Of a DNA stretch of 64,000 nucleotides, positions 7,771 through 27,161 are shown one piece after another. Source of the DNA: Lepidodermella squamata (Eukaryota; Animalia; Gastrotricha); contig JBLDXI010000038.1 of the NCBI GenBank assembly GCA_047495785.1, positions 124,001 through 188,000 on the forward strand, read 5' to 3'. Both the position numbers and the translations under genes were made by a program. Numbering within the stretch: the first letter of the stretch is position 1; every line of letters starts with the position of its first letter. The notes beneath the pieces are model-generated. The model saw nothing but the letters and a program-made list of their open reading frames with translations, was not told the origin of the DNA and made no database searches.

Positions 7771-9408
7771 TTAGGCAAATGGAAGGTTTTCAATAAATCT
7801 GTAAATAAGGTCAAATGCCTGAAGTGGCTTATCGTATGGAACAGCGTGACTAGCATCGCGAACAACTGCGAAAGTAAGATTCCGGGCTTTGGTGACGTAG
7901 CCGCTGACGTCGTTGCTGTCAGACAGCAAATGCGGTAGGCTAACGCCCGTCCAGACAGTTCGATTAGCGGCTGCTGCTAGAAAGTCCGCTTTACCAGGCC
8001 AGTTTAGTCGTCGCAAAAACGTATCTGTAGCCGGCGTCGGGACAATCATGTCTTTCATACCGCTGAAATACAAAACTTTGACCTGGCTCGAGTTGAGCAT
8101 TTCTTCGACAAGAGGTCGAACACTTTGCGGAACGTCGTCTACCAGGTACTGTTTAACAACCAAATTCAGATGGGTGAATGTTTGATTCCCGACGTGCAGT
8201 TTTAAACGAGTATCGTCCGACGTAACGACGGGTACCCAGCTAGACCAAGATGGAGGCTCAGACTGGAAATTCAAATAAAAATATTTTGAATAAGACTTCG
8301 AATTAATCACCATACCGGGCACATGTTTACAAAGTCGTAGTATATCAGGCATCCAGAGCTGTTTTGATAAAGACTGGGGTATGGGAACAAAATCCCATGT
8401 AAAATGATCTCGTTGAATATTTCGTAAGCTTGGGTCCATTTTTGTTCGTGGATACTAGAAACGAATGACTGGGAGTAGTTTCGGAATGTGAGAAGCTCAG
8501 GATAACTAGCAAGGCCCAGGTTGTAGAGATGCTCGCCAATTTGCGGAACCATCTGTTCACGAAAGTTTAAAATTGAATTCAAAAGAAAAATACCGGAAAC
8601 ATACCGATTCCGGATCACTAAGGCCGTTTCCAACAATAATACCGTTCAGTTTGATGCCACTGCCACCTTGCCATTCTTTCCAAATCCGGTGGCCAAATGC
8701 TGGGACGTATTTACCGCCATAAGACTCCCCGGCGACGTAGACACCCTGCTGATTAGCGTTAGGAAATACCTGCACGAATTGCTTGAGGAAAATGTACAGG
8801 TGATCAGCGACTTCGTCTTCGTTAGTTCTGTAGTCACTGTCTTGAGTTACGAAGCTGTAACCAGTGCCGACTGGGCTGTCGATGAAAATGACGTTGTAGT
8901 ACATGCTCCATGGCAACTGGTCGCGAATCGTCACCTTAAGATATTATATAGGATTATCATTTGATAAGAGGGAAGAATATAACAGAAGAATCTTCACCTT
9001 GTTCGTCGTTCCATCTATCATGTAAGGTCCGATTTCGACGAATTGGCCGAAAAGGCTCGGCGAGCCAGGCCCGCCTTGCAGCCAAACAATGAGAGGAGTG
9101 TCTTGTTCGTAACGCATCGTTGCCGGGAAATACCAGAAATACAGACTGGCTTGCGTCGTGTCATTTACAGTTATATAACCACTGTGGCTTTTGACATCTT
9201 TCCCGGCGATGAACGGCGGAACTTCGCTATCAACCCTAGCTGAAGACCGGAACAGAGTAGGATATTAAGCCTTGCATTTTTTTATATGCTAACCTTCATC
9301 GAACCTTCCGGCTTTAATCAAAGGCGTGAGAAAGAGTGCCTGTCCAGGGTCTGATTGGACCTCGGACGCAAAGGCACAAAATAAGAGGAGAAATCCTGTT
9401 AAAACCAT
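7771..9408 (-). CDS. CPVL: Serine carboxypeptidase S10, CPVL/vitellogenic-like, copy 1
   Basis: Signal peptide plus ALFLTPLIKAG; WLQGGPGS; FIDSPVGTGYS; catalytic GESYGG, GMKD and DASH; four short introns. Confidence 0.88.
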
Positions 9409-9866: not shown

Positions 9867-10513
9867 ATGCTACTTATCAACCTCAAAAACTTTCTGTGCG
9901 GCTGGTGCTTGATCGCAATTCGGACAAGCTTAATCAGTTGCTTGAACTGCTACAAAGGCGCGTTCTACTTCAAATGGTTGATGCCAAATGAAAGTTTAGT
10001 CGCGTCAAGAGGCCATGATTTTTGTTTGGTACTCTTTAAAAATTATTTTTTTTACATCAAATTAATCACGAAATTTTTCAGATAATGAAGCAAAATATGA
10101 CGTCGAATATTGTGCCAGCTTTCGACGGCAGCTGGAGCGTGGCTTACAGCGGTGAAAGCGTACCCGGCCTCAAATGCTCTGAATTTACTAACGGATCGGT
10201 CGCCGACACCGGTGTCATGAATGTCACGGTTACAATGTGCGTTTGTTGCACTGATTTGTGCAACAGTCTCAGCTACAACTGCGGCAACACCAACGTCACA
10301 GCCGCCCTCGCTGGCCCGTCTGCACCCCCGGGTGGTGGAAGAATGGGCAGAGGCTCAATGGGCAACGGCACAAACAGCACTAATGCTACGATGGGCGCCT
10401 CGAGGCAAGGCGATTCCACAGCTGCTCATGTTCACCATGGCAACTCGCTGATCCTGCTGCTGTTGATACACCTAGGCATTTGGACGGCTTTCGAGCGCTT
10501 CATGTCCCTTTGA
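9867..10513 (+). CDS. Ly6/Quiver-like secreted GPI-anchored Cys-rich protein (8-Cys variant), copy A
   Basis: Signal peptide, LNCYKG, intron after FCL, CVCCTDLCNSLSYNC, Gly/Ser spacer and hydrophobic tail. Confidence 0.8.
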
Positions 10514-11470
10514 CCAGCCGCGATTATAAAAGCCTTTCCCCCTGATTATCTAGATCTGCAATAAAACCCGTGTGTGCGCTTATATTTTTTGTGTAGCATA
10601 CCACTGATTTATCTCTTACTACCCTCTGGAAAAAAATAAAAGATCTTACGCTTTGTTTACCTAGAATTTTTTTTTTACCGCGGGCGTTATTGAGCTGTGA
10701 AAATAGTACAATACACAAGGTAGCGGATGCTGTAGTATATTTACCCAGGGTTAGCATTTGCTGTCGAGGAAAGACAAGCGTAAATTAGCATTACCATCTA
10801 TGACAATTACACGGCGCGTCGCGAGTCCCCATCGCCATGTACAGTAGAAATCAATAGTCTCAATTTCCCTGATTGCTAAATCACGGGCTCTTAAATTTAC
10901 TACTATCTTTATTAGTGGTTCCTCTATACTAACTGCCTAAGCAGAGAAGAATACGAACGCGATTCTCGGCGCATCCTGTGAAGCGCATTCTTCACTCTGC
11001 GCGCGTGTGGCCTCGCGTCAGCAATACAGGGTGCCCATGTTAATGGCTTGGTGCATGCGGATCTATCTCTTTCTTTTTGTAGTAAGATGATGTATTTTCG
11101 CATCTCTTATCGCAGTCGGCATAGCAGCCTATATCGTTTAGCAGTGCGCGAGGGGCTCACTCTATTTTAAGGCGTTGAGAAAATACGCGCGCAAGAGTAG
11201 CGCGCCGACATCGTTTGTTGATGCGCGTTGCCTTTTCTACACATCTAGGGCAATAATAATGATAAGCCTAGCGCATCATTGCTTGTTTTCTTAATCGAAA
11301 TAATATTAAGAGCATTACGCCAAATTAAGAACAACAAATTTCTAGAGTAAAAATACATTTCAACGCCTGATGTATGGTACATCATCATCTCTCCAACATG
11401 TGTTATACTAGTAACGCATTCATCTCAAGTTTTGTCTGAATCATCTTACATGTAGGTCTGCTGTACTATT

Positions 11471-11996
11471 ATGTTTTGCCGACTTTGTTTACTGGCAATC
11501 ACCACCGTCTCGGCAATCACCTGTCTCGATTGCTACAAAGGTGCCATTTTCTTAAACTGGATGCTACCCAACGACAAGAACGAGTCAATGACAACTATTT
11601 CACACAAATTATTCTGCTTCGTAAGGCTATAACCCCTATATCTAAAACGGTTTTTCAACTCCATTCCTATAGGTTATGAAGCAAGACGTCTCCTCTGAGA
11701 AAGACAAAGCGTTTAACAACGCCACAAGCCTTCGATACGCTGGCGAAATATCTGGGATGGACGTCTGTTCGGAACATAGGAATGTTACTAAATTGACGAC
11801 TAATGTCGCGAATGTTACTGTAACTCTGTGCACGTGCTGCACCGATTTGTGTAACAACCAGAATTTTACCTGCTGGAATTCAGGCGTAAGTAACGGGCGA
11901 AGTGATATTTTAAGTCCCTTCCTATCACTCATTGTTAGCCTGCCTGTAATACTGCACTTAACAGCTTCACGCTCTAGTAGTTCAAATCAAGTGTGA
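11471..11996 (+). CDS. Ly6/Quiver-like GPI-anchored Cys-rich protein (8-Cys variant), copy B
   Basis: MFCRLCLLAITTVSAITCLDCYKG...FCF|VMKQ...CTCCTDLCNNQNFTC, hydrophobic tail; paralog of 9867-10513. Confidence 0.8.
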
Positions 11997-12080
11997 CCTC
12001 GACATATTTATTACGATAATCTCCGGTTGAATAATTATTAAATGTTTTCTTTTGCATAATAAATTTCGAGGATGATACGT

Positions 12081-13842
12081 TTAATCTTTGAACGATTTGT
12101 TCTCGATAAATCGATAAATCATGTCGTAGGCTTCGATAGGTTTGTCAGCCGGAGCAGCGTGACCTGCGTCTCGAATTAGAGCGAAAGTCAAAGTTTCGGC
12201 CTGAACGACGTAGCCGTTGACTAAACGGTCTTTCGACCCATTAGGATCGTCCCGGGTCCAAACAGTCCGGTTGTTACCTCCAGCTGCCGCAAACGCGGCC
12301 TTACCTGGCCAATTCAAATTTCTCATTAGATTGGCTGTAGCTGGCGGTGGTACAATCAAATCGTTCATTCCTGTGTAGTATAAGACTTTGATAGTTGTAG
12401 AATTTAGCAGCTCTTCGACGTAGGGCCGGACGCTCTGAGAGGCGGCTTCCACCAAATGCTTTTTCACTGCTTCTCTCTGCCGATAGTACTTCAACGCGCC
12501 AACATGAAGTTTCATCCTCACATCGTCCCGTTCAACAAATGCCCCGAAATCTTTGTATTCTATTGGCAATTTCTGTATGAAAAAAGTGATAAATTTTATG
12601 GCTAAGAAGCTAGGAGGTAACTTATACCCTGCAATATCGGAAAAAATCAAAGTAGACGAGGCATCCAGAGCTGTTAACGTAAAGGCTGTTGTAAGGGTAG
12701 ACAACGCCGTGATCGATAAGCATGTCGAAAACGGTTGTTGCCTCTCGCCAACGCTCCTGATTGACCAAGCTCAAAAACTCATCTGATCCATTGCGGTAGG
12801 TCAGCAGTTCCGGGTAACTCAGTAGCCCCAGAGAATACAGGTGTTCACCTATATTCGGCACCAGCTGGAAACAAGGTAAATAGCATTTTTCAAAAATGAA
12901 AAGTTTCCAGAAAATCACAAAAACGCAATCACCAATTTTTCGAGGCTTTCAGGAAAGTTTTCCACAAACTATAGGCCTATCCATTGGATGTAACCGCATC
13001 AAAAAATTCCTGATGGTTTTGGAGTAATAGTTGGAAAAATGAGCGTAAAAAAAGTTGCATATGATGCTGTAAAATTTGAAAATAAAATTCTTACTGTTGC
13101 AGGATCACTTAAGCCGTCCCCAACCATGATTCCCATCAGTTGAACAGGACTCGTGCCAGCTTGCATCTCTTTATAAACTCGATGTCCGAAGGCTGGGACG
13201 AAATGGCCTGCAAAAGATTCACCAGCTATGTACAGGCCATTGATAGCTGCATTAGGATACAGTTGCACGAATTGCTTCGTAAATTCCCACAAATGATCTA
13301 CTACGCCATCTACGTCATTTCGGAAGTCATCTTTCGTCACCGTGTAGCTGAACCCAGTGCCGACAGGGTTGTCGATGAAAACCACGTTGTACAAGGTATT
13401 CCATGGAAGTTGATCTCGAAATTTCACGCCCACCGTAGGGTTGCTAGGGTCGATTTCGTACGGACCCATTTCGACGAATTGACCGAATAAACTCGACGAC
13501 CCAGGCCCGCCTTGAAACCAGAAAATCAACGGCGTATTTTCCGCCCTTCTCATGAAAGGGGCGAAGTACCAGAAAAACATTTGGGCATTAGTTGTTTGAT
13601 TCACGGCTATCAGGCCGCTGTAGCTCTCGATGTTAGCACCTGGTATGAGTTGATCATTTCTACTCAGCTCAACCGCTATAACCAAAGAATGAAGAGAGAC
13701 TTCAAAACATTGAAAAATAAATTCTCTTGCCTTCAGCTATTTTTCCAGCATTAATCAACGGAGTGAGAAATAAAGGTTCTCCCGGGTCTGAAAGCACGTC
13801 ACCTAGGATCCCCAAAGTTAGCAATAAGATCTTCAGCAGCAT
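12081..13842 (-). CDS. CPVL: Serine carboxypeptidase S10, CPVL-like, copy 2
   Basis: PLFLTPLINAG; WFQGGPGSSS; FIDNPVGTGFS; catalytic GESFAG, GMND and DAGH. Several intron positions are shared with copy 1. Confidence 0.88.
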
Positions 13843-14003
13843 CGTATTTTTAATTATAATGAATTGAAGATAACAATTAAAAGCTCGGCTATATCTTTTA
13901 TCACCCACAGAAAAAAAGATAATTTTTCGAGGTGCGCATTATTTTTACTATGAATCAAGTAAAAGTGGACTATTATCATTTAATATAACAATAAGTATCA
14001 GCA

Positions 14004-16173
14004 TCAGACATTTATTGTTCCTACTTCAGCCATTAATTCTTCCGGTTTAATTGAGGCATTAGTCTTGCTGTGATGATGGCTTTTTGCAGGCTTAGTTTCG
14101 GAATGACTCGTAGATTTCGCCTTATGTGACTTGGGAATCGGGGCGATGCTATTATCTTTGTTGGCCAAGCTATCGGAATCGACGCTGCCATTAGCTGGCG
14201 CAGATAATCGCATGCTAATACCATCCGTCGATTTATTGTCAGGTTCAGCGGCCGAGGCGTTTGACTTGGACTTCGAAGCCCTACTTTTGCCGCCTTCGTG
14301 CTTAGATTTTCTATCCTTCGGCGTGTCAACCTTATCAGCCGCGCTCTTACTCGAAGCTGATATAGCTGAATGCTGACTGACACTTGCCTTTATCTGGCTA
14401 TGCGACGAACCAACCGCATTTGCCGAAGCGCGAATGCTGGCAATTAAATCGCTGCCCTTCTGTTCGATAGCTGCGGAGTTTCTCGCATCTGCGGCGACGT
14501 CGTTGCCGCTGTTCTGCGAGAATTGTTGTAGCAGGGCCTGGCTGGCATTGCGCCGCGCGATTTCGGCCGCCGCGGCTCGAGCAGCTGTTGAAAGAAGGAC
14601 CCCTCAACATTATGGAACAAGAACAACGAAAAAAAAACATGCTCAAACTCAACATTCAATTAATATTGTGCAAGAGAAAGTAACTAGAAAAGCTAATAGT
14701 GCAGATTGTTGTAGTAAAATTAAATTAATCTCAAAAACGTTGTTTAAAAAGCAAGCGTCAAGACTATCAAAAGTGCAGTTGATATTTATAGGCTATAAAG
14801 TCATTTACATGCTGACTGTCTTCTTTTAACTTTCATGCTTCTGTTAAATTCTTAAGTTTTAAAATAATATTTGCATCACAAAAGCTAAGCTCATGCAAGT
14901 GCATTGTATGGCCTACCTGAAAGCGTTTTCGAAGTTATTTTTGAGCCGATCAAATGCGATTTCAGCTTTTGAGTAATGAATTTAGGCCGCAAGTCTTGCG
15001 ATTTGTATAGCCACGTCCAGGCTGAGGTAAATGAAAGAACAACACAGATCCAGGCGAGCACGAACGACCAACCGAATTCGTAAGTTCGAGCCGCTTCTAT
15101 CACCTCTTTGTAAGGGACATCTTCAGAGCGAATAAATTCGCGTAAATGAATTAGGTGACATTTCGCGTGGAATAACGCAATTGCAACGGTGTAAGATATG
15201 CCTAATATAAAAAGGCTTATTTTTACGAGAAAAACTCGATTATTTAACTCAAAAATCGAACCTGCACCCAGTGAGGCGAAAGAAGCTGTGAGCAAAAGAG
15301 CCCGGTGCTTGACCGAACTTCCATAAACGCCGGCTGAAAGATTAACCAGCATTGAAGCCAGGGCTAACAACGCGAATGCAAATGCAGCGACTTCCAGATC
15401 TAATAAAAACGCGTTATTAAAGTTGAGAATTTGAGGTATCTTACGTTGAATGGCAGGGACATCATGGTCTTCATGGCTAAAGACAAAATGACAAGCGGAA
15501 TGGCCCATGTTCAAACGTGCTCTTACACCGGCTGTGATTACAAAAAAAATTAATAAAAAACAGACCCATGAGATAAGCGCTCACATTCTAGGTTATCACA
15601 ATCTCTGAAAAGATTCCCGTACTCGCGGAACAAAACAAGAAAGACGACTTCGCCGCACATTTTGTTGTTATCATTCGCGATCGAGCAATTCGGAACGCGT
15701 CTGAAGTAGGTTTTCTTCATGAGGCAGGGCGGCTCGTAGATGGTCATCTCGTACTCCTGGAAGAAGGCCGGTGGTTCGTTGACGGCCGGAACCACTGGGT
15801 TATTTTTATTCCGGCCCGGCTTTGTCACGCCATTCGGCGCCGCTGTTGTCGTAGTCTGCACCTTTTGCCGCACTTTGGCCGCATTCTGAAGCAGGGACCC
15901 TTCAATGTTGTAATACCGGGTGTGGTTTATCACAATGTAAGAATCGGTGTCAGGTACTTTGATCAAATCGGTCTGTAAAAATTTGAAAAGTCTACATTTT
16001 AAGGTGGATTCTACGCCCATCCTTACCGGTTTTCCCCTCTGCCGTATTTTTGTCTCAATTTCCGTTTTGTTGAATCCGCGGTACTCCCAGTAATCTGTCG
16101 CTAGGCTTATGACCAGCAAGACGGTCAAGTTACCTGCCAGGATGATGGTACTGTATTGAAGAATGTCGAGCAT
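14004..16173 (-). CDS. Claudin/PMP22-superfamily tetraspan protein with long Ser/Lys/Ala-rich C-terminal exon
   Basis: TM1 plus ATDYW, GNLFRDC...C extracellular motif, three more TMs ending FGWSFVLAW. Introns 15973-16026, ~15533-15583, 15400-15444, 15202-15261 and 14585-14916; the last joins an open 14004-14584 exon in phase 1. Confidence 0.78.
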
Positions 16174-17123
16174 GGCTAATTGTCGCAGTCGCTGCGGTCG
16201 CGGTTAGAATTTGTCAAGAATCTAGCATGATTTTTTAGCTGCAAGAAGCGTCGCTATTCATCATTTTTGTCAGTAATAATCTGTGAATGCGAAAATTACA
16301 ACAATATAAAGGCACAAAGGCGCGACGGCCAAGAGCCGATCTCTTTTTTGTGTGTGACGGAATTCGGTAATATAGTAGCGGTTGAAAGTATAGCCCGCAG
16401 TGCCGCGTAATGCGACAACGAGTAGGCGGAGGATGAGCAGCAAGCGTGCGGCAAACGATGGTTCTTGGGCAGCATTTGGCGGGCGCGACTCAAAAATAAT
16501 AATAATAATAATAATTTACACAGCGCCGGCGATGGCTGAAAATTCGATGCTAGGACCGAAAATTGTTTTATTGTGCACTATTTTGAGAGCGAGAGCTCGC
16601 GACGCATCGATTTTTCGCTGTTTCCTTTGCTGCTCGGCCGCTTCTCGCGTCTATATTTTCGCCATGCCGATTCCTTTTTTTTGCCTTGAAATTTACAGAT
16701 GTCCGCGTGTTGTGCGCTGAGTGCGCTGTTGTTCTGCGCCGATGTAATAATAATACATAATAGTAATGAGTAAATAGTTCTTACCAAACACATAGCCGAT
16801 TATATGCATCTATACACGTCCGTCTAAATGATTTGGTGATTTGGCGCGCTTTTTAACGGGCCGAAATGTTCCTCTTCACCCAACGACTCGCCGTCGATTA
16901 AGCAAGGCGAGAAAGTAAGGAAAACAGACAAAAAGCGATCCTGATCACTCATATTTCAGCTTTATTCTACGTAATTAAGGCGTGCAATTTCAGCTTTTAA
17001 AATCATTTTCTGACGTAGCGCAACAATATTTAGTGTAAAACATGCGTGATAGAAGATTTAAGTGTTCGATTACGTCGCCAAGTTAGGGTTAGGTTTCAGA
17101 TAAAGGTCTAACTTCAATTATAT

Positions 17124-17681
17124 TCATACACTAATCATCGCCAGGAGGGTGTTCTGGCACTCGGGATTTCCGCTCAGAAAGATCACGAACATAAGAGAAA
17201 TAGCTGCAATAAGATGAATCATCGAGTATGGAGAGGAAGCGCCTCCCTTCAACGGACTCTGGTCCACCTTGGCAGGCGCTGCTGGGGGCGGTAAACAGTC
17301 TTGCTTATCAAAGCTATTGCACATGTCGCTGCAACAAGTACAAACCGTAGATGTTCCGTTGTACTTGCCGATTTCTAACGGGACACCAGTCGTACGGTTG
17401 TTACACGGTACGGTTTTATCGACTTTTTCACAATCGAACATTGCAAACGCCAGCTTCGCGCTTGTCACTTTGATCACCTAGGTATACGAGAAAATTAGCT
17501 GTAAAAAACCTTAAAATAAAACGTTGGCTGTCACCAAGCAGGCAAGGCATCCAGTTGTTTTCGATGAGTTGTTGGGCAATTCCGGATAGTTGAAAGTTCC
17601 ACTCGTGCAGTCCAGAGAATAGCCAACAGCCCAAAAAGCAAATGATGCAATGCAAAGGGTTGGCAAAGTTATAGCGGTCAT
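17124..17681 (-). CDS. Ly6/Quiver-like GPI-anchored Cys-rich protein, copy C
   Basis: MTAITLPTLCIASFAFWAVGYSLDCTSG...GCLACL|...CTCCSDMCNSFDKQDC, Pro/Ala spacer, hydrophobic tail. Confidence 0.8.
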
Positions 17682-17996
17682 TCTCTGCGAATTTTCTCGA
17701 AAACTCAGGCATCACTGATGAAATTTTACATTCGAGGGCCAAGTTCGTGACTTTTATTTATAAATATTGAATGAGTCCCTTCGTTTTGAATTGAAAAAAT
17801 CTTGTGTCTCGCTAGATTAGCACGCAATAGGGATCGCTCAAAAATGCGAAAATTTCGCGGTTGGGAATCGAAAAAATACGAATCGCACTTGCGAGAATTG
17901 AACCGAAAAATGAGTTCCGAAAAATGTTATTTTATTTGCTAACATACTTTACATTAATTTTTAACATATTTTATACAGATTTGACGCTGCCTCCTA

Positions 17997-18542
17997 TCAA
18001 GTGAATAAAGCAGCAATCGCTAGGCTGAGCAATGAAGATGATCCTAGGACCCAGTTGTAATAGGCACCTGCAGGCCGATTCGCATCGCACCTGGTGGCTG
18101 TTTGGTTGACCTGTTGTGGCTGCGGCTTAAAGACACACGCGCCCTTCTCGACGCTGTTGCACATATCAGAACAGCAGTAGCAAACGTGCGATGTCCCATT
18201 AACGTTATCATCGTTCGGAGGCGTCGCAACGTTTGACAGTGACTGTTCTTGGCATGGAACTTGAACATCCTTGACGCAATCGAAACTAGCGATGCTTGAA
18301 TTGTCCGCGTACACCGTTTTCCCTACCTGTAGAATTGATCACCCTGAGAGGCTACAAGTCTAACAAAATGTTGGAAATATTACCACGCATAGCGTACAAC
18401 CAGAGTCTTTCCCCATGTTAACGTTACTAAAACCGGTGATATTGGAGTAGATGACGGCTCGATTGCACTCTAAACTCGACACTGTCGCCATAATTGCGAG
18501 AATAGGTACCACCCATTCCATAGCTAGTTCGAAAATCGACAT
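17997..18542 (-). CDS. Ly6/Quiver-like GPI-anchored Cys-rich protein, copy D
   Basis: Signal peptide, LECNRA...GCTLCV|...CYCCSDMCNSVEKGAC, hydrophobic tail. Confidence 0.8.
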
Positions 18543-18674
18543 TTCCTCGATAGAAGAAACTTTCGAAACTTCAGATGAGAAAAAGAAAGCGATTTACAAC
18601 ACTAATTGTTTATTCGTATTTTTTCGCATTCGATTAGTTTGGCTCATGAGAATTTCGCAATTAATTTCTGAGAA

Positions 18675-19122
18675 TTAGAACAAGAAAACTAAGGGGCTTA
18701 GCATAATAGCGGCCGTGATCAAGCTCGAGGTAGCAAATCTAGCGCCGCTATTTTTGCACAACTTCTCCGCCGAATTGCATTTGTCTTTGCAGCACGAGCA
18801 GTAGTAGTAGTTGGTGTTGACGCTCGACGACGTTTCGCTACAAGCATCTTTCGTGTTGCAGCTTAGCTCGATTTTCGTAAACAAGTCTGTCGTCAGCTTT
18901 TTATACTACATACAAAACAGAGTTAAATCGAAGAAAAATAGCCTGATAAGATCGCTATATTACCTCACAAGCGCTGCAGCCTGTAGCGACGACGATTGAG
19001 GAGTTGGCGTATCCGGGTAAAATTTTGCTCATGACGAAAAGATCGGCCGTATTGCAATCGAGGCTGTCAACTGCGGCCAACAAGGCGCCGATCGAGATAA
19101 CGAAAAAGATTTGCTTGCTCAT
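18675..19122 (-). CDS. Ly6/Quiver-like GPI-anchored Cys-rich protein, copy E
   Basis: MSKQIFFVISIGALLAAVDSLDCNTA...GCSACE|YKK...CSCCKDKCNSAEKLC, GPI-type tail. Probable 5'UTR intron (donor ~19236, acceptor ~19127). Confidence 0.8.
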
Positions 19123-19481
19123 GATTCTGTAGAAAAATAAAAGGTATACACACCCGCTTGTATTGTGTTCAAAAGGGTTTTTTCAGCTTCTGAACGTTGA
19201 GCGACAGCTTTTTAAGTGGTTGATGTATAGCCTTACCTGTGATGACTCAAGCATTCTTGAGCGCAGCGTCAGCCAGGTGTGAATGGGGATGTAGCAGCTA
19301 TACAGTAGGCTTAAAACGTTATGACAAATGCATCCTATTGTTTGCTATAAGCTTTTTATGATTCATATCGATCTTATAAAAGGTTTGAATGATTTAAAAA
19401 AACCCAGCATTGTTTGGTAGGCTTTGAAGGCTCTGGAAACGATAAAGTCTGGATTTTTTGCCGCCTTAAAGGATTAAAATT

Positions 19482-19782
19482 AGGTCCTCCTGTCACCGGA
19501 ACCAAATGTACGGTGAGCGGAACCACATTTTGGAATGTTCATTGGGCCTAAAACCAATTTTCTGAACTTCCTAAAAGATGTTTCTATAGACCGTCGTAAT
19601 TATAAATAAATTTATAAATGTATAAATTATTTATAAATTCAGCGTGTAATATTCATTACAGGACGTTCACTTCAGAAATTATATGTTGTCCCAAATTCTT
19701 AGAATATTATTTGAAAATCAACATTTGGCACATTTCGAGTTAGGTTCCGCAACAGAAAATTTGGTTCGGCTAAAAAGGTTCT
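19482..19782. mobile_element. Degenerate fold-back element (old MITE)
   Basis: Left arm ccggaaccaaat...gcggaacc matches the reverse complement of right arm ggttccgc...atttggttcgg. Inner arms tgaacttcct / aggacgttca, and a quasi-palindromic AT-rich centre at ~19598-19639. Confidence 0.5.
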
Positions 19783-20123
19783 GATAAAAACTATTTATAA
19801 CGATTAATTGGGTCGATTAAAAGGGGGAAGGAGATGAATTATACGGGTTGCTCCTAGCGAGTTATTAGGCTTCATAATTCCATAATTTCAGGATTGACTA
19901 GGATCGTATCATCTAATTATACACCGCTCAATTTGAGACATTATAAATAGAAGAATATTTTCTGAGATTCTGTTTTATTCTCATATAAAAATGATTTGTT
20001 CACATTTTTAGTAAAATAACAGAGCAATCATTATTGGCGTGACTGAGTAAATAAATGCATTTTGCAAAAATATTCAAGTATAAAAATTTCGAGACATCAT
20101 TAAACTAGAGCTATTGGATTGAT

Positions 20124-20570
20124 TTAGAGCAGAAGTGCCGTTGCAAGGGCGACGAGAAGAGCTGCGCTAGCGGCCATTGATTGTGCGTCACTGGCTGCGC
20201 TTCGAGATTCCAGAGCTCTGAGGATGTTGCACTCGCCACGGTTGATGTCATTGCAGAAATCAGAGCAGCAGTAGCAGGCATAGGTCAAGGCAGTAACGTT
20301 ATTATCAGCCGGGGCAGGGATAGAAATCATCTGCTCCTGGCATTTTGAGTCGTCCTTAACGCAGACGTAGTCGATAGCAGCGACGGTGTTGCCATTCTTC
20401 ATTGTGCCAATCATGCACATAGAGCAACCGGTTTCTTTCGTCATTGTCTGATTGGTAGCTCCGGGCAAGTTGCCATACACAACGGCTGCTTTGTAGCAAT
20501 CGAGGCTGCTAACGGTGGCGAAAAGAGCCGAGGCTGAGATGATAAGAATCATGGTTGACGAGGCAGACAT
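20124..20570 (-). CDS. Ly6/Quiver-like GPI-anchored Cys-rich protein, copy F (intronless CDS)
   Basis: Single ORF: signal peptide, LDCYKA...GCSMCM...CYCCSDFCNDINRGEC, GPI-type tail. Confidence 0.85.
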   Translation of the reverse strand: MSASSTMILIISASALFATVSSLDCYKAAVVYGNLPGATNQTMTKETGCSMCMIGTMKNGNTVAAIDYVCVKDDSKCQEQMISIPAPADNNVTALTYACYCCSDFCNDINRGECNILRALESRSAASDAQSMAASAALLVALATALLL

Positions 20571-21185
20571 GATGAGTTGATTTTAGTTGTTGAGACTTGT
20601 TCAAGTTGATAAAAACTTATTTAGTTGAGAATGATGTTTAACCAGAAGCGGGTGAGTCGTTTTTATACCATCGCAAGTGATTCGGTCGACAAAAATGCGG
20701 TTTAAGCTCTCCGCCCGCCTACCTTACTTTCATTCTTAATAATAGAAATAGCGATGAATTAAAGCGTACGGTATTTTTTATAGAGAGCGTGACGCAGGTC
20801 GCGTTATGATTCATCGCCATTTCGAACTTATTCATTACGCGGCAAGAGGCAGTAGGGAGAAAAAACGCGCCGCATGAGAGTAAACAACGAAACAAAAAAC
20901 ATTCTAAAGGTGGGAAAATAAAAAAACACTTAAAACCAAATGTGCGAAACCGTCTCTTCACGTTTCCAAAACCGATTCGCGTTATATGGAAAATCAAATT
21001 ATTTCCGTTATTTTATTGAAATATTGTTTATTTTGATCCGCTTGTTTACATCCCATTCAAGAAAACATGAATAACGAAATTACGAGTTTATTATTAGTAT
21101 TCAGTCATGAAATCAAAGTAGTTTTCATCGGGGTCATATCAAACTATCAAAGAATCATGATTTTTTGATCGGTCCTGAACAGAGT

Positions 21186-21650
21186 TTACAGGAGACGTGC
21201 TGCAACAACAATGGCCGCCGAAATTGTGAGGAATCCAGAAGCTGCTGTGGTGGCTCCTGTACCCTTAGCCGTTGTTGTGGCAGGTGCCGCCGCCGAGCAG
21301 CCCTTTTCGAGGGTGGCGCAGAGGTCCTTGCAGCAGGTGCAGGTACCGCTCTGGTTCTGCTCTTGACATGCACTTTTTGTTTGGCACTGAAGAATGTTTT
21401 GCGTATAGTCTGGATTTACAAGACCCTTGATATTCTATAAAACAGATTCGGATTACATGGATCGGTGTTATATACTTCTATAATTTACCGTGCAGGCGCT
21501 GCAGTCCTTTTTGACAACCACTGTTACGTTGGTTATGCCCATCGTAATTTTCGTACCAGTGTGAAGCTGCCCTTCGTAGCAGTCGAGCGCGTTAACTGCC
21601 GACCAAGTCGCCATGAGCAGCGTTGAGGCGAAAATCACAGTCGAGTACAT
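21186..21650 (-). CDS. Ly6/Quiver-like GPI-anchored Cys-rich protein, copy G
   Basis: MYSTV...LDCYEGQLHTG...DCSACT|NIKG...CTCCKDLCATLEKGC-AAAPATTT...AARLL*. Confidence 0.8.
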
Positions 21651-22097
21651 TTCGGTAAAATGGGCCAACTAAACAAATTTAATAATTGAATATAAAATGT
21701 GCTGCAATTATTCGAAATAAATCGTTACAGGCAGAATTTCACGCTACCTTGGCTTTAATGATTTTTACCTAGGCAAACAAAGCGTGATATATTTCGAGCT
21801 GTAATATTCTGTGGTTGAGTTTTCAGCTGTTAGACCTTTCTCGGTGGCTGGGGTTTTTTCTGCATTTAGACCGTTTTTTTTATTCATACGTGTGACTATA
21901 AATCTAGCGTTTAACCAGCCATATAGCGTAGTTGTCAGCTGAGCGACACTTGACAGCATTGTGGTCTGTTAATTTCGCTGCTTCTCACGCAGTGTGATAT
22001 ACTCATAAAAAATAGTACTCCATCGGGATCATTAATCAAACAAAAATAATTAATCATGGTTTTTGATCGTTCCAGAATGTAAGCATATAGCGATATT

Positions 22098-22564
22098 TTA
22101 GATCAGACGCGCTGCGACGACTAAGGCCGCCGACATAGTGAAGAATCCAGCTGTCGCCGTAGTGGCTGAACCTTTAGCATTGGGGTTAGCTGCATCGCAG
22201 GCCATTTCGAAGTTGGCGCACACATTTTTACAGCAGATACAAATTCCATTCATGTTATAGTCGGAACACTCCTCGCTGGTTTTGCACGTTAGGAATATAG
22301 AAGTGAACTCGGTAAATTCACGCTTGGCATACTGAAGTTTCAAGACGAAAACAGGCGTCATTCAAAGACTATATATGTTTAGGTTTTTCTATTCATTACC
22401 ATGCAGGATTTGCAATCATCTCTAACTACAATAGTCACGTTGGCTACGCCCTGCGGAATTTTCTTTCCAGTGTGGAGCTGTCCTTCGTTGCAGTTGATCA
22501 GCGCGTTAACTGTTGACCAGGTCAGCGTCAACAGTATCGAAGCGCCAAGTGCAGGCTTGAACAT
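22098..22564 (-). CDS. Ly6/Quiver-like GPI-anchored Cys-rich protein, copy H
   Basis: MFKPALG...INCNEGQLHTG...DCKSCM|...CICCKNVCANFEMAC...AARLI*. Confidence 0.8.
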
Positions 22565-23217
22565 GACTGATGATTGATGGAGCAACAAAATAATTTATCT
22601 AGGCAGTTAGATTAAAGCAACATAAAACACGCGATCGTGTACATTGTACTTAGTAATGAGAACAGCCTGAATTTCGAAACTCATTTGACTGAATAAATAA
22701 AGAAATTAGTACAATTATTTGAAATAAATAATTTTATGCTGCCTCAGCAGTTGAAAGGATTTTTACCAAGCGCAAACAAACGCAAATTAGCGGACTGTAT
22801 CACGCCAGTTATTTCGAAATATTTTTTCCACCGTTCGACATTTTTCTGTGGCTATTTGACCGTTTTTTATTCATATACGTGTGGTTAAAAATCTAGAATT
22901 TAGCCAGCCATTGCGTAGTAGCCAGCTGGAGCGACAATTGACAGCTCGTTGTTGGCGCTACTTCACATCGTCTAGCGGCGGTCTTACGCCTTGGTAGTAC
23001 AGATTGGCTGACAGAATATCAGTCAGCACTGCGCGGGCGGTGTTGCTACTTTTTCAAGCGCTATCCCCTATGAAAATTCATCTCATATTATATCTAGTTA
23101 TAATATGGGAGTTATCATGACATAAGGTCTAGATCCTCAATATGAAAGTTCTGCCAATCCCAGCAATATTTCCCCTAAAACGCTTTTATATTGCAGTTTT
23201 TATCAACTAGCGGTACC

Positions 23218-23252
23218 AATCAGCAATCAGCAATCAGCAATCAGCAATCAGC
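23218..23252. repeat. (AATCAGC)x5 tandem repeat
   Basis: aatcagcaatcagcaatcagcaatcagcaatcagc read directly. Confidence 0.9.
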
Positions 23253-23857
23253 CGTTGAACTCTCCCAAAATTTCATGCTAGGACATGTGCAAGCTTACCA
23301 CAACACCGCCTTTTGCCAATAGGGTTTAGAATGGAAAACGGCATGCTGGTCATTCGGAAAGTTCCAAGCTTTACGGTGTCTCTATCAGAAGATGCATGAC
23401 CATCTCGAAGGATTGCGCTCATCAGTATCTCTAGACACCAATTACTGCAACTAGCTAATATTCGCCACTCTGAGCTATCTTGAAGTTATAAGCAGTATCT
23501 ATGTTTTCGGAAATGATAGAAGTGTCATGCAAGAGGAGGTTGGAAACCAAGTCGACTCAACCCTTTTGTGAACCTATTCAACGATGGTGATATCGCTCCG
23601 TTTCCCGAGACAAATAACCAAGTTGGAATCAATATAGGAATGGGATTTAAAAAATTCCCCAAGATTCATAATTTTATTCACGTATCTCTGACTGAAATGA
23701 GAAAAATGACAATTTAGATGGACAGAGAAAGGCGCTAACCACCAGACCTACAAAGCATCGGAGATATATTTCGGCTGCGATGTCCGGCCCACTTACTTTC
23801 ATCATGATCATAGGCGATGAAAATAAGAAGCGACTAACGTCAGTGAATTTAGTTTTT

Positions 23858-24284
23858 TTACATCAAACGTGCAGCAGCGAAGACGGCAGAGACGGTGAAG
23901 ATGAGAGCGGCTTGTTGCGTGGACGCCGAAGAGCAAGCCTTGTCGAAGGTTGCGCACAGGTTCTTGCAACACGTACAGGATCCGCTCTGGTTCTGCTCAA
24001 CGCACTTGTCAGCATCGACGCCACAAGAAAGAACATTCTGCATGTAATCCGCGTTGCCGTTTTTCATATTCTATTCAAATAAGTTCTCATAAATAAATTA
24101 ATTAAAGGGCAAGAAGGGTTACCATGCAGTACTTGCAATCTTTCTTTGTCGTCATTGTAACGTTCACGATCCCCATGGGAATCTTAGTCCCGGTGTGCTG
24201 CTGCCCTTCATAGCAGTCGATGGCGTTAACTGCTGACCAAGTAAGAACTATCAGCATCGAAGCAGCAACAGCAAGCTTGAACAT
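23858..24284 (-). CDS. Ly6/Quiver-like GPI-anchored Cys-rich protein, copy I
   Basis: MFKLAV...IDCYEGQQHTG...DCKYCM|...CTCCKNLCATFDKAC...AARLM*. Confidence 0.8.
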
Positions 24285-24984
24285 GATTTATGAAAACAAA
24301 AATAACCTATAAATATATGGGAAATTAAAGAAGAGCTTAATTTTGGGCTTAAATACGAGCTGTTGACAACTTTTTCAAAAATTCTATCAATTTATTGAGA
24401 TTATCGCTTTTTATAGGCAAGTGGCGAGTAATGTTATATATTCTACGGCTGTATATCGCAGGGTGTGCGACAGAAAGCTAGCTTTTTGCATCACCGCCTA
24501 GTTGGTCGCTTGCCTGATCACTAGAACGCCAGTTTTTTCCGTAGATCAAGTGCATTGCGTCATCTGTTTCTATTTTTAGGCGAGTAGTTCTGTCGCCTGA
24601 AGGCTATTAGTTATTCAGGCGTGAGGCGCGGCCGAAGGACGGAATAGCGGGCTGAAGGTATTTGCAATCAAGCCGTGAAATGTACCTGAAATTTAGGTAT
24701 TTTCCTTGGTATTCAACCTAAATATAAATGTTTTTATAACTTTTGACAACGTGAGGTAAAGCAAGTAGCTTGTATTATAGTGCAGACTGTGCGCCTCATA
24801 GTATGATTATTGTCAAATAGTTTCTTCGCACAAGTTTGCGCAAAAAACTCGCCTCATTTTATTCTTGACCGACGTTCCTTCGTACATTAGGGTGAACACT
24901 ACGCATATGCACCAAAATATAATGGCTAATCACTCCTTGCGTGGCTATGTAACAGAATGCTGACTCTCTTAAAAGTCATAAAAA

Positions 24985-25512
24985 CTAATAGCCAGATAGT
25001 TTCGTAACAGCCATCTCCATTACTAAAGTGATGACTATGAAGTAAAAGACGAATGAATCGTGGCCAGCTAACATCAGCGCTGGAGTGGCAAAGCTTTTTT
25101 GGGCGACCGCCATGGCGTTTGATGAATTTGTTCTGCCTCCAAACGCCGTTGCATTGTTGCCGCAACTATTTTCGAAAGTTGCGCATAGATTTCTACAACA
25201 TGAACACGATACATTGGTCGACTGCTCGACGCATCTCCCAGCTGCGTTGCACGACAGTTGCAGCTGCGTGAAATCACGGCTGATAGTTAGGGAAAACTTC
25301 ACATAGGTATGAAACGATCACAATAAGCCAACTTCATGGGAAAATCCTACCATGCAAGTTTGACAAGTTCGGTCAATAGTTAGGGAGACGTTTGAAGTAC
25401 CGGCTGGCACCCTACGGCCAGTCACAAGCGTGCCAATGCTGCAGTCGATTGCGATCACGACCGACCAAGCGGCGATGAGAAGGCTCGAAGCGAAGAAAAA
25501 CGACCTTAGCAT
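24985..25512 (-). CDS. Ly6/Quiver-like Cys-rich membrane-anchored protein, copy J
   Basis: MLRSFF...IDCSIG...TCQTCM|...CSCCRNLCATFENSC, longer spacer, hydrophobic tail. Confidence 0.78.
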
Positions 25513-25776
25513 TCGCGCTTGTCACACTCTTTTAGCTAATGCGAAATGGTATAAATTATAACAAAAATCTGAGGTTCGCAATGGTAAAGTCGTGTTTCCA
25601 ACCCGGCCGGTTCTACTAATGGATATCACACGTAGAGGTCGTATAAAATTGGTATACATTTTATTGTGCCTTGTTCACTTGGAAATGTAATATAACTAGT
25701 ATAACAAATTAACGCTTCACAGGCGATATCGCGCGCCTCCACGGCTTCAATATACTTTTTGAAGAGTTAGCTTCAT

Positions 25777-26118
25777 CTATAGAAGGCGGGGGGCGACGAG
25801 GGCGACGGCGATGGTCACGAGTCCAGACGCGACGACTCCAGTCGCTGCGTTCTTAACCGTTGTCGGACCAGCAAGGGCGGCGTTTTTTGTTGTACCAGCA
25901 GCAACGGTGGTAACGCTGGCGACGGTTGTCTGAGCGGCGCCAGTGGTTGCAGCGACTGTTGTCTGGGCGGCGGCGACTGTGGTTTGGGCAGCGGCAACTG
26001 TTGTCTGGGCACCGACTGTTGTCTTGGCAGCCGTAGTAGCAGCTGGTTTCGTGGTCTGGGCATTGCAGACAACGGCGGACAACGCGACAACGAGCAGAAA
26101 GGAAGTGGCTCTGAGCAT
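25777..26118 (-). CDS. Thr/Ala-rich mucin-like GPI-anchored protein with (AAAQTTV)n repeats
   Basis: Signal peptide, ~21-bp internal repeats, no Cys in the mature part. The C-terminal tail resembles those of copies G/H/I. Confidence 0.8.
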   Translation of the reverse strand: MLRATSFLLVVALSAVVCNAQTTKPAATTAAKTTVGAQTTVAAAQTTVAAAQTTVAATTGAAQTTVASVTTVAAGTTKNAALAGPTTVKNAATGVVASGLVTIAVALVAPRLL

Positions 26119-26718
26119 TTTTTAAACACCCGTTTGTTTAATGAGAATGCAGTATGAAATTAAATCGTGTTTTGTTATAAGCTAGAATTTCCCTAGTATG
26201 TTTATTGTTGACTTGCGCACCGTATTACACCCGGCGCGCCAACCCAAACGCCATGTCTCCGTGAACATAATAGCCCCGGGCGCCGCGGGCCCTTGCCAAC
26301 TTCAGGGCTTTGTTTTTTCATTCACACATACACATACACGGGCCTGCACTGATGCGTTTTTCGAGTTTCATCTATATTTTTCCTGTGGATCATCATCTTC
26401 ATTAATGCTCATCACGAAGTACTGCCGTGTGTTGAATGGCTACCACGTTTTGCCGCTAGGTGCTTTAAGGTCGACACCGCCGGCTTTGCGGTGAAAACGC
26501 CGTGTAATGCGCACGTGAGGTAATTGCGGATGATATTCACTGGTAACGTGAAGCAAACGACGGGCTCCCCGAGCTTTTACCTTGATCAAAGGGCATTATT
26601 TAAGACGTGAGCACGTAGCCTAAATGTTACACACAGATTTTTCTGCGAAGTAAAACGGCGTTCATCGCCTAGGTGAAAATGTCATTAATCATTTAAAAAA
26701 AATATAATTTTAATCAAA

Positions 26719-27161
26719 TTAATAAAACTTCAAGATCACAACACTAGAGAACAGAATAATGCTATAAATCGGATTGAGTTGTAATTTGTTAGCTTCGCTG
26801 CTGCACAACTGATCGGCAGTGTTGCACTTGTCCCAACAGCAGGAGCACGTGAAAACTATGCCTGCCGTTGAGTTCCTTATGCCACAGGGTTCCTTGGTGA
26901 CGCAAATCAGCTCAAAACGGGTAAAAACGGGAGACGTAGTTCGCTTAACCTGTAATCGTATGTCCATGATGATTTTGAAATTCAATATCGGGCAAACTGA
27001 ACCTGACAAGCAGTGCAATCTTTTTGAAGAACTGTAGAATTGGTAACGCCAGCCGGCAGGGTTCCGGCGTAAATGTCCCCTTTGTTACAGTCTATACCAT
27101 TCGCGATTCCCCACAATGACGTGGAAAATATGAAGATTGAAGCAAATAGCAAAACTTTCAT
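26719..27161 (-). CDS. Ly6/Quiver-like GPI-anchored Cys-rich protein, copy K
   Basis: MKVLLF...IDCNKG...DCTACQ|VKR...CSCCWDKCNTADQLC, hydrophobic tail. Confidence 0.8.

Follow-up and report, generated by a model that had tools for sequence, protein, structure and literature searches.

Tandem genes of the gastrotrich Lepidodermella squamata probably encode a cysteine-augmented branch of the Ly6/uPAR/Quiver three-finger superfamily

Three-finger (Ly6/uPAR) proteins are a major part of the animal cell-surface toolkit, with roles in ion-channel modulation, cell junctions, complement protection and fertilisation, and specialists expect Ly6 genes to expand in single lineages with changes in the cysteine pattern. 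The described systems closest to the locus reported here are the Quiver/Sleepless proteins (Pfam PF17064, QVR), the classical Ly6/uPAR proteins (PF00021; CD59, Lynx1, PSCA, GPIHBP1, TEX101, CD177) and the short-chain snake toxins (PF00087). The locus is an array of 11 small genes, named A to K, at positions 9867-27161 of a 64,000-nucleotide stretch of the gastrotrich Lepidodermella squamata (assembly GCA_047495785.1, contig JBLDXI010000038.1, positions 124,001 to 188,000; the whole stretch is called the window below). In all likelihood this array is a tandem, lineage-specific subfamily of the Ly6/uPAR/Quiver superfamily of three-finger (LU-domain) proteins. Each gene would encode a secreted precursor of about 125-200 residues in which a signal peptide is followed by a single LU domain, a short spacer and a hydrophobic tail; in at least seven genes the tail resembles a glycosylphosphatidylinositol (GPI) attachment signal, and the mature protein would then probably be displayed on the outer face of the membrane. 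By analogy with Ly6 and Quiver proteins, the most likely role of the products would be to bind other surface proteins while tethered to the membrane, or to coat the surface; an earlier note on this DNA had proposed a receptor or ion-channel-modulator repertoire, and nothing in the present analysis lends support to either role or points to ion channels in particular.

The genes, all 11 of which were located where the earlier note had placed them, share a terminal signature, C-x-CC-x-[DN]-x-C-[NA]-x5-6-C, of which a six-frame translation of the window contains 11 instances, always between the start of gene A and the end of gene K, compared with 0.0 on average in 200 shuffles (the three examples quoted at the time correspond to genes A, F and G). 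A and B lie on the plus strand and the nine genes C to K on the minus strand. In C to K, the mature domain holds 10 cysteines, namely C1, C2-x-x-C3 (at the end of exon 1), C4, C5, C6-x-C7-C8, C9 and C10, spread over about 80-95 residues, within the bounds of a published Ly6 criterion of at least 10 cysteines in 60-110 residues (PMC4492491). A and B are built differently: they have an N-terminal C-x-x-C, only C3 at the end of exon 1, a glycine in place of C4 and nine cysteines in the mature part. They alone display the N-terminal C1-x-x-C2 of the same criteria (PMC4492491), C to K having a single N-terminal cysteine, so that the first-exon pattern C-(x~20)-CxxC once ascribed to every copy holds for C to K and fails for A and B. 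The last core cysteine is followed by asparagine in seven genes (A-F and K) and, as the earlier note had read, by alanine in the four others (G-J); a further cysteine comes after it in all 11. Cys-Ala is limited to these four genes among the approximately 79 domains read genome-wide, and their third finger is much shortened. Ten of the 11 genes carry an N-x-[ST] sequon in finger I, all at one alignment column. Both a hydrophobic N-terminal signal region and a hydrophobic C-terminal stretch are found in every product, in agreement with the signal peptide and tail claimed for all copies, and in D, E, F, G, H, I and K the stretch lies at the extreme C-terminus, with 0-3 residues beyond it. The hydropathy layout would thus fit GPI anchoring for these seven genes, with no clear reading for A, B, C and J, so that the description of the products as GPI surface proteins stands in part.

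The same genome contains, on contig C6, an array of the Quiver type that passes the Pfam cut-off for QVR (34.2 and 28.0 bits, the cut-off being 27.3). Its eight-cysteine layout consists of L-x-C-Y-x-G, N-C-x-x-C-x-K, two middle cysteines, C-Y-C-x-T-D-L-C-N-S-A and a tail. Like the Quiver/Sleepless proteins and those of the C6 array, the window proteins combine a single LU domain with a signal peptide in front and a hydrophobic tail behind and are encoded in tandem; with the C6 array they further share the lone N-terminal cysteine in L-x-C-Y-x-G, the CxxC where fingers I and II meet, the two middle cysteines and C-x-C-x-x-D-x-C-N. C to K can be described as this same layout with two cysteines more (10 as compared with 8). 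Profile alignment with hhalign matched the window family to the C6 type over the full length (E 5.4e-5, probability 66%) and, with a larger profile, over the motif region (E 1.1e-4); it lays C-x-C-C-x-D-x-C-N onto C-x-C-D-T-D-L-C-N, which marks C8 as the cysteine added inside the motif and C10 as the one added after it. In comparison with QVR, the window family therefore has a cysteine as the residue after C-x-C and another after Cys-Asn, four copies carry Cys-Ala, and the Pfam QVR score is nil. Both the Quiver relation and the two extra cysteines of the earlier note are supported by this alignment, and the cysteines also by their co-occurrence in the family at large.

With the classical Ly6/uPAR proteins the window proteins have in common the predicted fold (Z 5.6-7.4) and the organisation in clustered gene families, as well as their small size; judging by the predicted sequon and tail they would also be glycosylated and probably GPI-anchored. 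Measured against the published criteria (PMC4492491), C to K lack the N-terminal C1-x-x-C2 and the loop-I disulfide; moreover, the end motif is CC-x3-C in the window family and CC-x4-CN in Ly6 proteins, and the window family is without a Pfam match. The short-chain snake toxins likewise possess an eight-cysteine core devoid of the loop-I disulfide (Z 6.3, root-mean-square deviation 2.6 over 60 residues), but they are secreted and tailless, hold eight cysteines and end in CC-x4-CN, whereas in the window proteins fingers I and III are longer and there is a tail of the membrane-anchor type. The extra bonds described in three-finger proteins sit in loops I, II or III (PMC7582953), whereas the extra cysteine pair of the window family is C-terminal.

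Structure prediction covered, among the 11 genes, the domain of the intronless gene F. A first AlphaFold model, based on six aligned full-length family domains, has six strands, a predicted local distance difference test score (pLDDT) of 76 and a predicted template modelling score of 0.67; for a second, based on 16 sequences, five models agree (pLDDT 74.6-77.9). When the first model was compared exhaustively with 48,161 PDB chains by VIA-align, three-finger proteins filled 35 of the 36 top rows (Z 4.0-7.4), with TEX101 at Z 7.4, CD177 at 7.0, GPIHBP1 at 6.8 and a short alpha-neurotoxin at 6.3, and with AMHR2, ActRIIB, PSCA, Lynx1, kappa-bungarotoxin, C4.4A, Lypd6b, uPAR, mambalgin and CD59 in lower rows; the top Foldseek rows for the same model were Lynx1, CD177 and GPIHBP1. 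Three-finger proteins dominated again in the structure search with the second model, with a Foldseek probability of up to 0.98 for short-chain toxins. Matches in the ESM Atlas (template modelling score 0.54-0.61) were all clusters of Ly6, QVR or TGF-beta receptors, and language-model neighbours (0.90-0.91) were clusters of Ly6, QVR or toxins. The assignment is drawn from the uniformity of the match lists over three libraries and two models, not from any single score, and on these models it is supported that the F domain adopts the three-finger/LU fold that had been suggested for the array.

The wiring of the added cysteines can be approached by position and co-occurrence. C8 and C10 are both present in essentially all of the approximately 79 domains, C10 following within 2-9 residues in 70 of them and further downstream in the other nine, and both are missing in the 13 QVR-type or unrelated motifs of the same census. 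In the window genes C10 lies 5-6 residues past the terminal Cys-Asn (Cys-Ala in G-J); elsewhere in the genome this distance reaches about 16 residues at most. The order and spacing of the cysteines in C to K fit four head disulfides, which by position would be C1-C3, C2-C4, C5-C6 and C7-C9, the loop-I disulfide being absent; that A and B have lost C2 together with C4 is what a canonical second head bond would lead one to expect, and it supports this mapping. Because the four head bonds, if kept, would leave only C8 and C10, these two most likely pair in a fifth disulfide that would staple the C-terminal tail back to the head, and such a head-to-tail bond past Cys-Asn would be a new position among three-finger proteins. 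More speculatively, the bond may have made the invariant asparagine dispensable and so opened the way to Cys-Ala in the G-J clade.

The family extends well beyond the window. In the 121.2-Mb assembly (151 contigs), a profile of the exon-2 halves gave at least 70 matches, including all 11 window genes and no others on their contig, and uncovered more arrays on contigs C32 (two), C25, C45, C23 and C42; the idea that the variant is specific to this array has to be given up. Reading of the matched loci yielded approximately 79 domains with C-x-CC-x3-C-N, among them multi-domain proteins and domains with Thr-rich or Trp-rich inserts: long Thr-rich inserts in the domain, one Trp/Gly/Ala-rich insert, and frames of two to four domains with Thr-rich linkers are spread over L065 (C32:3100500-3107500), L071 (C42:3125800-3127000), L006 (C23:558111-561389) and L055/L073 (C32:4.306-4.322 Mb). 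A regular-expression search for complete single-exon domains recovered only five that were already collected, the small number being due to the intron that most family members carry. One intronless family gene is present on two contigs, as L004 (C150:1-3202) and L005 (C13:3270604-3273951), with a single difference in a residue of the signal region; the two copies probably represent an uncollapsed haplotype.

In a tree of 73 core pieces (60 columns, many unresolved forks, midpoint root only), G-J come out as a single clade (97/88), E pairs with K (96/85), and the window copies cluster far more than under shuffled labels, as expected from local duplication; a tree of this size and rooting does not decide the order of gain versus loss of the extra cysteine pair. 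Amino-acid identity among the window copies is 19-62%, and their synonymous sites are saturated (proportion of synonymous differences 0.59-0.92, median 0.80). No pair has a defined synonymous rate (dS) of 1 or less, and such ratios of nonsynonymous to synonymous rates (dN/dS) as could be computed, 0.27-0.39, are unreliable; the saturation indicates old duplications and makes the paralog dN/dS uninformative. As far as the sequences can tell, the array arose through old local duplications and is one of several arrays of the family. A profile search of 1.84 billion representative proteins returned a single match, P0001 (E 1.2e-5), a predicted protein of 225 amino acids encoded by eukaryotic contigs (L056 and L057) from two ENA metagenome assemblies. 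P0001 bears the signature twice (VCSCCSDLCNSKVDFC and ECTCCSDKCNDAHIC) and a hydrophobic tail; its open frame spans one and a half domains, as compared with the single domain of the window genes, and has no Pfam match. It belongs to an organism other than that of the window, only 153 bp of its contig matching the gastrotrich genome, at 72%. On the metagenome contigs its gene adjoins that of a PTR2 peptide transporter. In the literature library searched, no paper links Lepidodermella with Ly6 proteins.

The 11 array genes are real and mostly expressed, and the splicing of C, E and G and the transcription of F were seen in cDNA. Ten genes have a two-exon structure, with predicted GT..AG phase-0 introns of 52-68 nucleotides placed one codon past a cysteine, which in the split genes among C to K is the one that ends CxxC; gene F is a single open frame of 148 codons. 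Contigs of cDNA from two public runs, with SMART-oligo and poly(A) loose ends, were examined on 17000-22999 (genes C-H). Their joints remove exactly the predicted introns of C (57 nucleotides), E (58) and G (54). One cDNA contig, 19958-20610, with poly(A) at 19958/19996, spans the whole of gene F without a joint, so that F is truly intronless; it also has the deepest coverage among the six genes examined. Gene D yielded only a weak unspliced piece, and no cover of gene H was found in the two runs. The conserved phase-0 intron of the earlier note is hence predicted in 10 genes, confirmed by cDNA in three of them and absent from F. At the 5' end of the gene G messenger (window position 21670), a cDNA contig carries, just upstream of the start, 11 non-genomic letters (plus-strand TAGACACAAAT), which could be the end of a spliced leader.

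A number of observations weigh against assigning the array to the three-finger superfamily with a GPI-type tail and a fifth bond. Pfam models run on F and on the exon-2 pieces of nine other genes (all but G) returned no family of the uPAR_Ly6_toxin clan even at E 10, so that the UPAR_LY6 or QVR match which HMMER might have given failed to appear, and the family profile, run against PDB sequences, found no Ly6 protein or toxin. Taken singly, the structural scores are middling, with Z below 8 and a best Foldseek E of 0.07, and the hhalign probability reaches no more than the value given above. The block holding C10 is modelled at pLDDT 56-62, and A and B, with their nine cysteines, have an odd number that leaves one unpaired. 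In A, B, C and J, the hydrophobic stretch is followed by 10-16 more residues; transmembrane anchors or wrong gene models are possible there. As to the wider searches, other family members gave no clan family at E 0.1 or below, a word-index protein search with F alone or with the family alignment found nothing, and the genome has 39 Pfam QVR and 32 UPAR_LY6 matches, none of them within the array. Spliced genes entered the alignments and searches exon by exon; one alignment, in which complete domains were combined with exon-1 and exon-2 pieces taken singly, was discarded, as it misplaced exon-2 pieces on the N-terminal half. Among the matches set aside, DUF3929, RRM_9 and CAAX_1 were at chance level for F and the exon-2 pieces, DUF7629 (E 0.0016, under its cut-off) has no real match in the genome, and a cytochrome c555 in the PDB search was spurious, due to CxxC only.

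These observations bear on four other explanations. The domain might be an unrelated small disulfide-rich beta domain that merely resembles three-finger proteins by convergence, for which speak the absence of any Pfam or PDB sequence match, the single distant match in 1.84 billion proteins and the middling Z-scores; however, structural match lists made up almost purely of three-finger proteins, the profile match, over the whole length, to QVR genes of this genome that Pfam recognises, and the shared signal peptide, tail, cysteine order and terminal Cys-Asn render convergence highly improbable. If the fold and family are granted, the wiring may still differ: the motif could be a vertebrate-like CC-x3-CN with C7-C8 as the adjacent pair and a new bond from C6 (or C7) to C10, or some bonds could be intermolecular. 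The motif can be read both ways from sequence, its C-terminal block is poorly modelled, and the odd cysteine number of A and B implies that free or intermolecular cysteines do occur in the family. Yet hhalign sets C8 on a non-cysteine column of the eight-cysteine QVR-type relatives and C6, C7 and C9 on their three cysteines, and with the four canonical bonds kept only C8 and C10 remain; we regard another wiring as doubtful, and the C8-C10 bond as the one to prefer.

Membrane attachment and the integrity of the array can be questioned in turn. Secreted three-finger proteins are common (PMC13719153), four tails are atypical, and GPI attachment of the products is predicted from their layout, so that soluble proteins (toxin-like, pheromone-like, or components of cuticle or coat) could be imagined. 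A hydrophobic end is nevertheless found in 11 of 11 products and, in seven, sits right at the C-terminus behind a spacer rich in small residues, which is the usual layout of a GPI signal; although a GPI-anchored protein can still be shed, a purely soluble array seems quite unlikely. That some copies are unexpressed pseudogenes, and part of the array dead, would agree with the cDNA record of H (none) and D (a weak unspliced piece), two runs and genes C-H being covered; yet every copy keeps its open frame, splice sites, cysteines and tail despite saturated synonymous divergence, which argues for long-term purifying selection on the scaffold and makes decay of part of the array unlikely too. The parts of the array are listed in Table 1.

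Table 1. Gene parts of the array, with window coordinates, strand and supporting observations (cDNA refers to genes C-H)
Feature	Position	Strand	Content and evidence
Gene A exon 1	9867..10028	+	Signal peptide, N-terminal CxxC, lone Cys before intron; sequence prediction
Gene A intron	10029-10081	+	53 nt, GT..AG, phase 0; predicted
Gene A exon 2	10082..10513	+	CVCCTDLCNSLSYNC; long Gly/Ser/Asn-rich spacer; hydrophobic stretch then 10 residues; 70.5 bits to exon-2 profile
Gene B exon 1	11471..11620	+	Sequence prediction
Gene B intron	11621-11672	+	52 nt, phase 0; predicted
Gene B exon 2	11673..11996	+	CTCCTDLCNNQNFTC; 85 bits to exon-2 profile
Gene C exon 1	17535..17681	-	Signal peptide, C1, C2xxC3; spliced cDNA joint skipping 57 nt (both runs)
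Gene C exon 2	17124..17477	-	CTCCSDMCNSFDKQDC; tail; profile match; unbroken cDNA contig 17000-17473
Gene D exon 1	18384..18542	-	Weak RNA cover; one low-depth contig runs through intron
Gene D exon 2	17997..18326	-	CYCCSDMCNSVEKGAC; profile match
Gene E exon 1	18964..19122	-	Spliced cDNA joint skipping 58 nt (both runs)
Gene E exon 2	18675..18905	-	CSCCKDKCNSAEKLC; poly(A) site near 18593; cDNA
Gene F, intronless	20124..20570	-	148 aa, full 10-Cys domain CYCCSDFCNDINRGEC; mature domain 20217-20507; cDNA
Gene G exon 1	21489..21650	-	Spliced cDNA joint skipping 54 nt (both runs)
Gene G exon 2	21186..21434	-	CTCCKDLCATLEKGC; Cys-Ala variant, short third finger; cDNA
Gene H exon 1	22400..22564	-	Sequence prediction; cDNA cover nil in both runs
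Gene H exon 2	22098..22331	-	CICCKNVCANFEMAC; Cys-Ala variant; profile match
Gene I exon 1	24123..24284	-	Sequence prediction
Gene I exon 2	23858..24070	-	CTCCKNLCATFDKAC; Cys-Ala variant; profile match
Gene J exon 1	25351..25512	-	Sequence prediction
Gene J exon 2	24985..25296	-	CSCCRNLCATFENSC; Cys-Ala variant; atypical long tail, 3' end of model uncertain; profile match
Gene K exon 1	27003..27161	-	Sequence prediction
Gene K exon 2	26719..26949	-	CSCCWDKCNTADQLC; profile match; Pfam only weak sub-threshold DUF7629

Two other genes, one for a serine carboxypeptidase and one claudin-like, interrupt the array between B and C. The former (12081-13908, minus strand) is a Peptidase_S10 gene of at least two exons (E 7.7e-53 and 6.3e-24), and another S10-like open frame (8944-9117, minus strand) lies directly upstream of gene A. 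The latter consists of two adjoining open frames of a four-pass membrane protein gene (14891-16173, minus strand), whose claudin/PMP22-like match, Claudin_2 with E 4.1e-6 and 27.1 bits, falls just below the cut-off of 29.1. In flies, Ly6 proteins and claudins both function in septate junctions; the neighbourhood of the claudin-like gene and the array may be due to chance, and no functional link is claimed. Between J and K, a 113-codon open frame (25777-26118, minus strand) encodes a product with a signal peptide, repeats rich in Thr and Ala (QTTVAAA) and a hydrophobic tail; this tail ends in VALVAPRLL and resembles those of G, H and I (VVAARLL). Its product has no Pfam match and looks like a mucin-like protein of GPI type, possibly derived from a member of the array family. 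Between E and F (about 19400-19750) there is a short high-copy repeat, at which many contigs terminate and the depth of a genomic run climbs from about 93 to 2288.

For the biology of the three-finger superfamily, what is new here is a cysteine-augmented, Pfam-invisible branch of Ly6/Quiver type that is greatly expanded in a gastrotrich, and not a new kind of biology. Three-finger proteins were counted per phylum with Pfam clan models in a 2026 hidden Markov model survey of invertebrate genomes, in which gastrotrichs were not included (PMC13719153). The present family escapes such clan models and yet roughly doubles the three-finger repertoire of its genome, with at least 70 matches beside the QVR and UPAR_LY6 ones. 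Chances are about even for the broader proposition, namely that this is a previously unrecognised three-finger class, invisible to Pfam clan models, in which a fifth disulfide from the head to the C-terminal tail makes the asparagine dispensable, and which would be the largest three-finger group of the gastrotrich genome (at least 70 domains) and be present in at least one other small eukaryote, so that counts in little-studied phyla would be systematically underestimated. In either event, the family offers a natural experiment on the three-finger scaffold, with an extra C-terminal cysteine pair, a clade that does without the invariant asparagine, and members that have presumably lost the second head disulfide.

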